A stretch of 64,000 nucleotides of DNA from Vitrella brassicaformis CCMP3155 (taxonomy: Eukaryota > Protista > Chromerida): assembly GCA_001179505.1 (NCBI GenBank), contig CDMY01000294.1:1-64000 (forward strand), in the 5' to 3' direction. Shown one piece after another: positions 35,719-39,584 of the stretch (its first letter is position 1; every line of letters starts with the position of its first letter). The translations under genes and the position numbers were made by a program. The notes below the pieces were generated by a model. The model ran no database searches. It was not told where the DNA came from and saw nothing but the letters and a program-made list of their open reading frames with translations.

Positions 35719-36829
35719 ATGCGTCGCACCTTCACGGTCCTCGCCCTCTTCGCCTGCCTGGCCTTCGCGGCTGCAACCGGCCCTGAGCCTCCGGCTGCTG
35801 AGACTCAGCCTGCTGTGGCCGACCCTGCTGTGGCCGAGCCTGCTGATGCAACCCCTGTGACGACAGACGACGACCCGGCAGCCGCTGACCCAGAGGAGCC
35901 TGAGGTCGAGGAGGAGGTGCCTCCTCCCCCTCCTGAGGGTCTTCTGGAGATGCCTCCTCCTGACGACGAAGAGGAAGATGAAGGTGCGTTGGTGGCACGT
36001 GTCGTGTAGATGCCTGCTTGTGTCGCTCACTCTCGTGCTCTGTCTGTCTGTCTGTCTGTCTGTCTGTGTGTCTCTGGGTGTGTCTCAGGTGCCCGCCGTC
36101 AGCTCGGCCACAAGTACGGGTATCACAGCTACTACAGGCCTTACCACTACGGCTACTATTATCCCTACTACGGCTACCACCACTACAAGTATTATGGCAA
36201 GAAATACGGCCACCACCGCAGCCTGAAAGCAGCAGAGACCGCAGAAGACAACGAAGGTACGATCAGAGGCCCACTACACACACACACACGCACGCACCCA
36301 CAACACACACATTCCTGCCTCGGTGTGTGGTGTCGGTGTGCTCATGTCAGCAGAGGCCCCCGACCGTCAGCTCGGCCACAAGCATTACGGGCATCACGGC
36401 TATTACTACCCTTACCACTACGGCTATTACTACCCCTACTACGGCTACCACCACTACAAGCATTATGGCAAGAAGCACGGCCACTACCGCCGCCTGAGAG
36501 CTCCGCAGGGTGAGTGACGTGACCATCACAGATGCTGGGGCTGGGCTTAGCTCGTGTCATGTCACCTTTGTTGTGTGGTGTGTTGTGGTGTGTTGTGGTG
36601 TGTTGTGGTGTGTTGTGGTGTGTTGTGGTGTGTTGTGGTGTGTTGTGGTGTGTTGTCAGGTGCTGATGCGCCTCAGGAGGCTGCTGACACTGCCGACGCA
36701 CCCGGCCGTGAGCTCGGCCACAAGAAGCATTATGGTCACAGCTACTACTACCCTTACCACTACGGCTATTATTACCCCTACTACGGCTACCACCACTACC
36801 ACAAGTATGGCAAGTACGGCCACCATTGA
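35719..36829 (+). CDS. Secreted Tyr/His-rich repeat precursor (253 aa, 4 exons) with R-x-L boundaries
   Basis: Exons 35719-35983, 36089-36256, 36351-36509 and 36660-36829 splice in frame with three phase-1 GT-AG introns. Signal peptide, acidic pro-region, then three near-identical YHGK-rich units. Confidence 0.88.
36581..36650. repeat. Intronic (TGTTGTGGTG)7 minisatellite
   Basis: Read directly in intron 3 of the Tyr/His-rich gene. Confidence 0.9.
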
Positions 36830-38063
36830 GTGTGAGACACACTTAGCCAGCCGAGGGCGTCGGTGGTGAACTGTCTCGTTGCGTGTCTGACTAACTAAAC
36901 AACACGATGTGCGCAATCCCCTGCCCTGTTGTGCTGTCCGTGTGGTGGGGGGGAGGGGGAGGGGAGGGAGAGGGCCAGCCAGTGACCGACAGCAGTCAGT
37001 GATGCGAGGGCACACTCGGGGGCACACTGGGGTTTCCCACTTGTTCGTGCCGTGTGTCTCCATCCATTGGTCGCTCTGTTTCTGGCCCCTCTCTCTCTCT
37101 GCCTACCTTTCTCTCCTCCTGTGCGTGGCGTGACTGTGGGTGTGAGGGTATTTGTCGTGCGTGGCTGGTTGACCAATCGGTAGGTCGGCAGCTGGAATTA
37201 ACAGACAGACAGAGAGACAGACAGACAGACGGACAGCACTCACCGAGCTCTCTGTTTTTCATGTCCATCATGTGTTTTTCCCGTTCTGTGCAGTACGTGT
37301 TGTCCGTCTCTCCGTCTGTGCATCTCACCTGTGCAGTCAGTGCCTATCTCTACTGCATGAATGAGCCTCGTCCCCACCGCACATGAGCAGCTCCGCTGTC
37401 CCCCTGTGTGCCAAGCTCGTCGGCAGACAGGGGGAGGGCGGGGCGGGCGGGGGGGCGGGCGCTAAGTTTATGAAGGGAAGGAAGGGACAGCCAGGGAGGG
37501 AGGGAGCAAGGGAGGGCGAATGGTCCTTTTCGGTTTTTGGCAGAGCGTTCAGTTCGGCAAGGCAGGCAGGCACTGGTCGTGGGGCATGGTGCCTGCGACA
37601 CACGACTGTGTGGAACGTGTGATTGTACTGTATTTCTCTCTGCGTATATTTCTCGCAATCAGTCAATGCAGTCAGTCAGTCGGATGGATGGTGACACTGC
37701 GAGGCAACAAACGTGTTGCTTGCATGGGCCGCTGGGTGCACGTCTGTGTGTCTGGGGGTCTTCATCGCATCGCAGTCGATGCCATCGAGGATGCATGGTG
37801 ACACTGGTGGTGGGTGGGACGCACGGATTGGATTAATCAACTGGTCAATCACACCAGAATAACGCAGATTGACTGACGCACAAACATACAAATGATTAAC
37901 ACTGAGACGGGTCCTCTCAACCCAGCCGCAGTAACGAATTAAGACGTCACACATCCGGTCCACCCATCGTATCCACCCACATACATCCAATGCTTCTGTT
38001 CACACACCAGAAAAAAGCCCCCGTGCCTGTCCCGAGGCAAGCAGAGCATATACCCACACGACT

Positions 38064-39584
38064 CTACCTCTCAACCACCTCAGCCGCCCCACCACCATCA
38101 TTACGGCTCCCTTCAGCCATGACCTCCCCCTCCCCGCTCACCACCTCTTTCGGACACAGTGAGAGGTACCACTTGGTGCGCTCCACACCATGCACGTACG
38201 TCACCGACCAGTCCCACGACACAGGGAACACGGCCGAGGCGTCGTGTCCCTGCCCGCCCGGCTTGAATGTGGTGGCGTAGATGGAGTGGTTGCCTGCGCC
38301 CGGTTGCGACGTGCTGATGGGGTAAGGAAAGAACCAACCCCGGTCGAGGCCCTTGGGGGTGTACTCGTGGGCACCTGAGAGCCAGACAGACAGACAGACA
38401 GACGGACGGATAAGACAACCGCATACAACCAACCAATGCAGACAAACCTGAGGGGTGGGTGGGTGGGGATATGTGGGCTCGGCTCGACCTACCTGTGAAT
38501 TGCCACTGTCCGTCCGCCCATATCTCGAGCCAGTTGTGGTTGCCGCCCGCAGGGGTGTTCCATATCGGAATTCCTACACCGCCAGCCAGCCAGATTGGAA
38601 GGCAGACAACACCCACACACAAACAACACATGCATTGATTGCACCATGACAATACACAGACGTCCTGGACACCCACCTGCCACTCTCGCAGGAATGCCCA
38701 CACTCCTGCACGCAGATGCTATGAGTATCGACAGGCCGGTGCACGAGGCGTTCCGGGCCTCTATCACGTCCAGAGGGCTCATGACGGCCGGCGTCCTGTC
38801 CGCTACAAACACTATCGGGGGCTCCCATGTCGACCAGATGTACTCGTTGAGCAGCTGGGCTGCCGCCCGGAGGGAGGAAGGGCTGGGGGGGTGGACGGAC
38901 AGCACCTTGCTGGCGTGAGAGTAGAGCACCGGCCGCCACGACTCTCGCTGCACCAAATCCACTCACCCACGAATGACCGACACACACACACACAGAGGGA
39001 AGTAAGGTGGTGCCTGTGTATACGTGTGTGTGGGAATGGTGGTCGGGTCGGTTGCTCACCGGCTCGTCAAAGTATGCGTAGGGCAGGACGTCATTGAGGA
39101 AGACCTCCCACGGCACCTCCTTGGCCCAGGGGAACTCCTCCCGAGCCTTGAGAGAGTACTGCACATGCTCCATCAGGTAGCCGAGAGACAGCCGCGCCAC
39201 GTCGACCTGCGGCATGAACTGCACCAAGAAGTGCAGACACTGCCACTCATCCGCAGACAGCCGGCCCTCCAAGCCAGCCACATCCTCCACGCGCAGCCCT
39301 TCCTCCGCACTGCTCCTCCCCGCAGCCAGACGCTTCTGCACCGTCTCGGAGAGCCTCTCAACATGCGACCGCTCTATTTGCGCGGTCACCGTGGGCATGG
39401 CGACGGTGTCTGCTGGCCGTGGGCGGTGGTGTGAGGCGCGTGGCGTGTGGCCGAACTTAGTTGCAGTAGGCGCGATGAATGTGGGCGGGCCGTGGACTGC
39501 AGCCGAGCACCAGATGGAAGAGAGGGCGATGAGAGAGGCTATTCGGGTCTCCTGTAAGCCAGCCTGCGAGCGGGCAGCTCCCAT
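38064..39584 (-). CDS. Transglutaminase-like superfamily protein (bacterial type) with N-terminal leader
   Basis: VPWEVFLNDVLPYA..EP..WR, ASCTGLSILIASACRSVGIPARVAG (catalytic Cys), GNHNWLEIW.DGQWQF (His). Hydrophobic IASLIALSSIWCSAAVHG near the N-terminus. Confidence 0.85.

Follow-up and report, generated by a model that had tools for sequence, protein, structure and literature searches.

The stretch of DNA considered here (hereinafter, the window) comprises 64 kb, i.e., positions 1 to 64,000 of contig CDMY01000294.1 in the assembly GCA_001179505.1 of Vitrella brassicaformis CCMP3155, a photosynthetic, coral-associated and free-living chromerid alveolate, sister to the apicomplexans. At positions 35719–36829, it harbors a gene for a 253-amino-acid (aa) product containing three Tyr/His-rich peptides bounded by R-x-L (RxL) triplets. 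By analogy with known precursors, this product can be understood, with a probability of roughly 45%, as a secreted disordered polyprotein whose RxL-fenced peptides are released by cleavage at RxL and play a material role. By the same analogy, RxL processing of the precursor appears plausible, and the findings described below suggest that its reading as an RxL-delimited polyprotein, put forward in an earlier note on this DNA, is reasonable and has been somewhat strengthened. The layout of an RXL-processed polyprotein is known from diatoms; the Tyr/His peptide chemistry, found here in a relative of apicomplexans, is new and unprecedented.

Layout of the Precursor and Its Gene

The precursor begins with a predicted signal peptide (the start codon and residues 1–19, i.e., MRR, a hydrophobic core and AAA; 35719..35775 on the plus strand, as are all parts of the gene). 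It is followed by a 75-aa acidic Pro/Ala/Glu/Asp pro-domain (residues 20–94; 35776..36105, spanning intron 1), which has a charge of about −22 and an isoelectric point (pI) of 4.05, and ends in ARRQL. Behind its terminal RQL, three cationic peptides alternate with acidic spacers. Peptide 1 (residues 95–131, GHK...GHH; 36106..36216; 37 aa, 4881 Da, pI 9.4) is bounded downstream by RSL (36217..36225), followed by acidic spacer 1 (KAAETAEDNEAEAPD, 15 aa, spanning intron 2; 36226..36364). An RQL boundary (36365..36373) leads into peptide 2 (residues 153–190, GHK...GHY; 36374..36487; 38 aa, 4943 Da), which is bounded downstream by RRL (36488..36496) and followed by acidic spacer 2 (RAPQGADAPQEAADTADAPG, 20 aa, spanning intron 3; 36497..36706). 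Finally, the REL boundary (36707..36715) precedes peptide 3 (residues 217–253, GHK...GHH; 37 aa, 4836 Da), which together with the stop codon occupies 36716..36829.

Tyr constitutes 39–43% and His 19–26% of the three peptides. Each of them contains, within 37–38 aa, 15–16 Tyr, 7–10 His, 6–7 Gly, 4 Lys and at most one Ser, and is devoid of Asp and Glu (e.g., the 37 residues of peptide 1 include 16 Tyr, 7 His, 6 Gly and 4 Lys); the peptide masses fall within 4.84–4.94 kDa and the pI values within 9.3–9.4. A 16-residue core, PYHYGYYYPYYGYHHY, is invariant in all three peptides, as is the GHK at the peptide start (3 of 3 units). The computed charge of the peptides amounts to +12 to +14 at pH 5 and to +3.5 to +4.4 at pH 8.1; for the complete precursor, values of about −7 at pH 7 and −13 at pH 8.1 were obtained. 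The charge shielding envisaged in the earlier note fits these values. Its description of the signal peptide and acidic pro-region, of the peptide compositions lacking Asp and Glu, of the invariant core and of the alternation of peptides with acidic spacers was reproduced when recomputed.

In the AlphaFold2 model, a hydrophobic helix of the signal peptide (residues 3–19) is the sole element of secondary structure; the rest is disordered, with a mean predicted local distance difference test (pLDDT) score of 48. The product is, hence, predicted to be intrinsically disordered outside the signal peptide. The N-terminus, with its hydrophobic helix and the strongly acidic region behind it, is of a secretory type. 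Targeting to the plastid was considered as well and ruled out, since the strongly acidic region following the signal peptide does not resemble a transit peptide.

The gene is assembled from four exons joined on the plus strand (35719–35983, 36089–36256, 36351–36509 and 36660–36829). The introns between them measure 105, 94 and 150 nucleotides (nt) and have the ends GTGCGT..CAG, GTACGA..CAG and GTGAGT..CAG, respectively. The lengths of the first three exons (265, 168 and 159 nt) place all three introns in phase 1. Intron 1 (35984..36088, GT..AG) includes a (TCTG)n microsatellite, intron 2 (36257–36350) is CA-rich, and intron 3 (36510–36659) contains a perfect (TGTGGTGTGT)x8 repeat. The spliced coding sequence of 762 nt encodes 253 aa; the translation is letter-for-letter identical to the spliced product claimed earlier, and an exact-sequence look-up found it to be the deposited gene call with the same coordinates (GCA_001179505.1, CDMY01000294.1). 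The CDMY01 record set represents V. brassicaformis CCMP3155, annotated with Augustus using intron hints from RNA sequencing (RNA-seq) (PMC4501334). The earlier suggestion that each peptide sits in an exon of its own bounded by phase-1 introns holds for the phase, with the qualification that the exon boundaries fall within the acidic spacers and not at the RxL sites. No open reading frame (ORF) competes with the gene on either strand, and the 64-kb window contains no further copies of the Tyr/His units, no transfer RNA (tRNA) genes and no Rfam families.

Two side observations concern the same stretch. The microsatellites in and around the gene are located at 36039–36073 ((TCTG)~9), 36270–36312 (CA-rich), 36574–36656 ((TGTGGTGTGT)x8.3, perfect) and 37201–37236 ((ACAG)9). 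Within the pro-domain, a 15-nt tandem repeat (CCTGCTGTGGCCGAC x2.5) at 35809–35845 codes for PAVADPAVAEPA. Short duplications also shape the evolution of the pro-domain.

RxL Triplets and the Evolution of the Repeats

There are exactly five RxL triplets in the product (residues 92, 132, 150, 191 and 214), each situated at a peptide/spacer boundary, as had been claimed for all five internal boundaries. Elsewhere in the 253-aa protein (in the signal peptide, the interior of the pro-domain, the peptides and the spacers), there are none, and all five Leu of residues 89–253 belong to RxL. When residues 89–253 were shuffled, 0.27 RxL were expected vs. the five observed, and five were reached in 0 of 20,000 shuffles. 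The repeats are non-independent duplicates, so the shuffle of a single unit is the fairer test: here, two RxL were observed vs. 0.15 expected (p = 0.0045). The enrichment of RxL is, therefore, non-random even inside one repeat unit.

For insight into the history of the repeats, the three exon modules were aligned with 60-nt flanks. The similarity of their DNA extends from the codons of the upstream RxL to two codons past the downstream RxL. Between the modules, neither the codons of the spacers nor the introns can be aligned, in the case of the introns possibly because they consist largely of microsatellites. The middle residue of RxL is variable (Q/Q/E upstream and S/R downstream of the peptide), and the Arg and Leu are constant. 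In unit 3, a stop codon occupies the exact position of RxL in units 1 and 2; this would be expected if the functional peptide ended with GH(H/Y) and RxL were an element of the linker. Over the whole unit, the comparison between repeats yielded 0.25–0.49 synonymous (dS) and 0.09–0.13 non-synonymous (dN) substitutions per site, i.e., a dN/dS of about 0.25–0.36, suggesting that the repeats are not very recent copies. In the 16-residue core, dN = 0 at a dS of 0.14–0.52, all the differences in its DNA being synonymous TAC/TAT changes. Judging by these sequences, purifying selection or biased gene conversion acts on the core. Outside the core, many of the replacements are Tyr/His exchanges, so the composition is preserved.

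Several points weigh against the release of the peptides by RxL cleavage and their proposed role. RxL is found at only two homologous positions (upstream of the peptide three times and downstream of it twice), so the five sites amount to two independent observations plus retention after duplication. Moreover, the adjacent GHK shows the same degree of conservation as RxL; with just two duplicated positions, RxL could, therefore, be merely a part of the repeat. The boundary pentamers (RQLGH, RSLKA, RQLGH, RRLRA and RELGH) have no Glu, Gln or Asp at position 5, unlike the Plasmodium export element (PEXEL), and RRL of the type known from its Toxoplasma counterpart (TEXEL) is present at only one of the five sites. 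The literature search yielded nothing usable on plasmepsin V/ASP5 in chromerids: a published tree of aspartyl proteases includes Vitrella sequences, and the accompanying text leaves their placement relative to clade D unstated. Neither the 1.84 billion representative proteins searched nor the metagenomes of the Joint Genome Institute (JGI) yielded a homologue of the Tyr/His product. Finally, the material function is argued from composition and analogy.

The first two of these points speak for a secreted but uncleaved block copolymer, in which acidic and aromatic–cationic blocks alternate and which acts, e.g., as a self-coacervating wall, matrix or adhesive protein, with RxL being a part of the repeat. 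Diatom cingulins are extracellular matrix proteins composed of alternating domain types which are not known to be cut into peptides, and this analogy speaks for such a copolymer too. We consider it the less probable, though still sizeable, alternative, with about one chance in four in its favor: the end of the last repeat coincides exactly with the start of RxL in the other two, RxL was retained while the spacers evolved freely, and it occurs nowhere else in the protein. In addition, the succession of signal peptide, acidic domain and RxL is a signature of processing in diatoms (PMC5525289; PMC4557024).

Relatives, Look-Alikes and Neighboring Genes

Relatives of the product were sought with an exhaustive phmmer search over 1.84 billion representative proteins and with a word-indexed search over 5.8 billion proteins. 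The former returned two matches with E < 1e-3 and none with E < 1e-10, namely, a protein from the Tara Oceans metatranscriptomes (P0001) and an uncharacterized protein of Anopheles aquasalis (P0002, XP_050097697.1; E = 6e-4); P0001 was also the single match of the latter. No Pfam family is assigned to the 253-aa product, and no match to it exists among PDB sequences. A scan of the JGI metagenomes with back-translated YHYGYYYPYY gave 0 matches, and of the 600 stretches matched in a second JGI scan, which looked for related loci by pattern, 0 were confirmed. The literature search found no mention of Tyr-rich proteins of Vitrella. As a control, the neighboring gene product CEM00019.1 is present in the protein collection with NCBI, UniRef, EukProt and MMETSP copies, which makes the lack of paralogues and of chromerid or apicomplexan orthologues meaningful; however, neither the collection of 15 billion proteins nor the representative library contains the exact 253-aa product, hence this lack is not absolute, and conclusions on transcript evidence are limited as well.

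The same searches bear on the question of whether the gene model could be an artefact of annotation or the ORF could be of low complexity and without function, having arisen in microsatellite-rich DNA. The introns are indeed mostly microsatellite, no homologue emerged anywhere in the searches, and the product is missing from the protein collection, no transcript-derived copy having been seen, whereas a MMETSP copy of the neighbor is there. Still, this explanation is very improbable: exons in separate frames combine, across canonical phase-1 GT..AG introns, into one ORF that opens with a textbook signal peptide, the repeats differ in the core by synonymous changes only, the annotation pipeline had intron hints from RNA-seq, and no ORF competes for the locus. 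From the sequence evidence, the Tyr/His gene is thus regarded as real and lineage-restricted to Vitrella, i.e., as an annotated yet uncharacterized orphan.

P0001 deserves a closer look. Like the Vitrella product, it has a signal peptide and a three-unit layout in which aromatic peptides take turns with acidic spacers of Pro/Ala/Glu/Asp, and the two proteins share the 13-mer YYPYHYGYYYPYY. This 13-mer is an outlier, since the substring typically shared across the P0001 family is only 4–5 residues long. The family itself comprises at least 119 proteins, nearly all from marine metatranscriptomes, and P0002 is a single-peptide relative of it. It follows a grammar of its own, i.e., a signal peptide and then repeated blocks in which an XA/XP acidic spacer precedes a Tyr/Gly/His/Trp peptide with G-K-R behind it. 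The boundaries, accordingly, differ from those of Vitrella: G[KR][KR] was found in 117 of 120 proteins and RxL before the aromatic block in none. In Vitrella, GKK is internal to the peptides and absent from repeat 3, so the peptides are not terminated by G-K-R. The compositions diverge as well, with 25% Gly and 4% His in the peptides of the P0001 family vs. 16% Gly and 22% His in those of Vitrella. The gene of one family member, P0004 (L002 1128-1826), is intronless and adjoins a gene with a Bcl-2 domain, which points to an animal origin. With composition-adjusted BLASTP, the E-value of P0001 vs. the Vitrella product was 8.5, compared with 5e-6 in phmmer.

P0001 was, therefore, rejected as a true homologue, in view of its G-K-R boundaries, its Gly-rich and His-poor peptides, its metazoan look and the lack of similarity in composition-adjusted BLASTP. 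As far as the sequences tell, the resemblance is probably convergent; polyproteins made of acidic spacers and aromatic peptides would then have arisen more than once, with differing cleavage codes. In its own right, the P0001 family (P0001 and P0003–P0120) represents a large, apparently uncharacterized, animal-type family in the Tara Oceans metatranscriptomes.

If the Vitrella precursor followed the rules of metazoan G-K-R precursors, a dibasic convertase of the kexin/furin type, acting at KK/RR sites, would mature it instead of an RxL protease. The YGKK of repeats 1 and 2 does align with YGKR, in which the P0001 peptides end, and RR is a part of two boundaries (ARRQL and YRRLR). The boundaries RSL, DRQL and GREL, however, lack a dibasic site; repeat 3 has a single Lys at the aligned position, and its KK comes right after GHK (GHKKHYG), so that cutting there would remove the conserved N-terminus. 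As RxL is the sole motif common to the five boundaries, dibasic processing is quite improbable, if somewhat less so than an artefact.

The surroundings of the gene yielded further observations. Upstream, a divergent gene on the minus strand reaches up to ~35244 (L001 1-4526); its 2079-aa product displays Pfam matches to tRNA-synt_2/anticodon-binding domains together with weak SACS and NOV_C matches, which is an unusual combination. Only 474 nt separate this gene from the Tyr/His gene, and a bidirectional promoter region may be common to both. A purine-rich G tract (GGGGGGGAGGGGGAGGGGAGGGAGAGGG, ~36947–36975) follows the stop codon at a distance of about 120 nt, presumably within the 3' untranslated region. 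On the other side, the adjoining gene at ~38064–39398 on the minus strand (L001 7346-8680) encodes CEM00019.1, a 333-aa protein with a transglutaminase-like domain; its nearest relatives outside Vitrella in the search are bacterial/metagenomic Transglut_core proteins, e.g., one from a metagenome-assembled genome (MAG) of Akkermansiaceae. A functional link between this gene and the Tyr/His gene was considered and discarded: CEM00019.1 has no obvious signal peptide, and nothing was found connecting the two.

Putative Maturation and Comparison with Known Systems

For the Vitrella protein, cleavage, secretion and localization are predicted from its sequence and by analogy, and the following scheme of its maturation is drawn with this in mind. 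An endoprotease of the secretory pathway, cutting after the Leu of RxL, would free the units. Documented cases of cleavage at this position come from diatoms and oomycetes as well as from Plasmodium and Toxoplasma (PMC4557024; PMC11754927; PMC4077696; PMC4764566). Peptides 1 and 2 would have their RxL tails trimmed off at the C-terminus, like the RRIL/RRNL tails of silaffin, yielding three GHK...GH(H/Y) peptides of ~4.9 kDa along with acidic by-products. Until then, the acidic pro-domain and spacers might keep the aggregation-prone peptides soluble at the near-neutral pH of the endoplasmic reticulum. In seawater (pH about 8), the His residues would lose their charge and the Tyr-rich peptides could condense. 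If the cleavage occurs exactly at L|G, Gly-His-Lys becomes exposed as a free amino terminus, which may bind metal: free Gly-His-Lys binds Cu(II) with a dissociation constant (Kd) of 240 fM at pH 7.4 (PMC10382716). Eventually, oxidative cross-linking of Tyr could make the peptides the material of an extracellular wall, a matrix or an adhesive. Localization of the peptides to the wall or sporangium and their dityrosine cross-linking, by analogy with other Tyr-rich proteins, belong to the realm of speculation, as does the ancestral use of the export motif envisaged in the earlier note.

If the RxL sites are cut, the protein would represent a natural substrate with several sites for an RxL protease, found in a relative of apicomplexans that lives freely, and would link the RXL maturation of diatoms with the PEXEL/TEXEL and RXLR pathways, making a pre-parasitism role of plasmepsin V/ASP5-type processing testable. 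If the protein is uncleaved, it is another orphan low-complexity secreted protein. A bolder version of the former case, which we regard as unlikely, holds that RxL cleavage is an old maturation system common to the whole assemblage of stramenopiles, alveolates and rhizarians (SAR), that its original clients were endogenous matrix polyproteins and that PEXEL, TEXEL and RXLR were recruited later. In the same version, the Vitrella peptides would form a new self-activating class, with GHK-bound Cu(II) catalyzing their own dityrosine cross-linking once the acidic parts have been removed and the pH has risen. At any rate, 37-aa peptides with ~40% Tyr, ~20–25% His and a Gly-His-Lys terminus are unusual candidates for pH-switched, metal-binding and cross-linkable biomaterials.

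In their chemistry, the peptides resemble the disordered Gly/His/Tyr(/Lys) low-complexity proteins of the mussel foot and of the sandcastle-worm adhesive. Squid beak proteins are likewise disordered Gly/His/Tyr low-complexity sequences; their His/Tyr-rich GHGxY peptides phase-separate upon deprotonation of His, the clustering of Tyr stabilizes the condensed state, and covalent cross-linking follows the assembly (PMC6884462). These are animal proteins with another repeat motif and without an RxL-delimited polyprotein, so the analogy extends to the chemistry only.

The same composition admits of another use. The peptides might be RxL-processed yet act as soluble effectors, i.e., as histatin-like antimicrobial peptides or scavengers of Cu/Zn/Ni in the coral-associated microenvironment. 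Their pI of 9.3–9.4, their 19–26% His and a Gly-His-Lys terminus (formed only after exact cleavage) would suit such a function, and acidic-spacer polyproteins, cf. the arthropod-type family described above, are typical of antimicrobial and neuropeptide precursors. On the other hand, ~40% Tyr without aliphatic hydrophobic residues is atypical of peptides acting on membranes, and such a composition is instead typical of material proteins which phase-separate or can be cross-linked (PMC6884462); this makes the effector function doubtful and leaves the release of peptides with a material role as the preferred reading.

Among Tyr-rich systems, GAM56, GAM82 and related Tyr-rich proteins of coccidia, as well as the His/Pro-rich GAM22, are also secreted in a lineage related to Vitrella. 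Coccidian Tyr-rich wall precursors are cut into small Tyr-rich peptides. In the oocyst walls, Tyr-rich proteins are cross-linked (PMC4776368). The density of Tyr and His is, however, much higher in the Vitrella product, and RxL, which delimits its peptides, is not described as a processing code of the coccidian proteins. They were among the matches of neither the exhaustive nor the word-indexed search, the library including NCBI, UniRef and EukProt; the likeness to them drawn in the earlier note, thus, found no counterpart in sequence relationship.

The export motifs of parasites come closer in one respect. Plasmepsin V cleaves the PEXEL motif (PMC4077696), and ASP5 cleaves a PEXEL-like motif and matures its substrates at N- and C-terminal sites (PMC4764566); in oomycetes, RXLR is cleaved prior to secretion, the cut falling between L and R (PMC11754927). 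The five Vitrella sites (RQL, RSL, RQL, RRL and REL) all share the RxL core, Arg occupying P3 and Leu P1. At the same time, the first of them is found at residue 92, i.e., 73 residues past the signal peptide, whereas PEXEL follows close behind it; RxL is reiterated in Vitrella as a set of polyprotein boundaries, whereas PEXEL is a single N-terminal export signal; and, unlike the parasites with PEXEL/TEXEL, Vitrella has no host cell to export into. Together with the residues at position 5 and the single RRL discussed above, the distance of the first site means that the specific attribution to an ASP5/plasmepsin-V-like protease, made in the earlier note, is not supported.

Diatoms offer the most complete parallel. 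Their RXL is the proposed recognition site of a dedicated endopeptidase, and RXL domains (as defined in PMC5525289) along with the RXL-terminated tails of repeats are cut off silaffins, silacidins and cingulins (PMC4557024; PMC5525289); in the frustule-targeted CinY/CinW, RXL is a potential cleavage site (PMC9650480). Frustulin precursors likewise belong to the RXL-processed class. Residues 20–94 of the Vitrella product fit the definition of the diatom “RXL domain”, since behind the signal peptide comes an acidic pro-domain ending with RXL. The silaffin precursor Sil1p of Cylindrotheca fusiformis comprises 265 aa, with a signal peptide (1–19), an acidic domain (20–107) and then basic repeats ending with RRIL/RRNL, tails which are gone from the mature peptides (PMC4557024).

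No sequence similarity of the Vitrella product to silaffins, silacidins or cingulins was detected by Pfam or the exhaustive phmmer search, and Vitrella is not known to silicify. In silaffins, the units are rich in Lys/Ser, carry heavy modification and are associated with silica; those of Vitrella are Tyr/His/Gly-rich, separated by acidic spacers, and carry 4 Lys and at most one Ser vs. 15–16 Tyr and 7–10 His, without the lysine clusters of the silaffin units. Nevertheless, the two precursors are of nearly equal size (253 vs. 265 aa), share an acidic N-terminal domain of ~75–90 aa and have an identical order of parts, with RXL ahead of the mature portion. Both also consist of tandem basic low-complexity units ending in R-x-L, as RSL and RRL in units 1 and 2 of Vitrella, with the stop codon in its place in unit 3. 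The earlier note had named the diatom class among the precedents of RxL processing without singling out this protein; as judged by sequence layout, Sil1p, rather than PEXEL/TEXEL proteins or coccidian wall proteins, is the best match among the known architectures.

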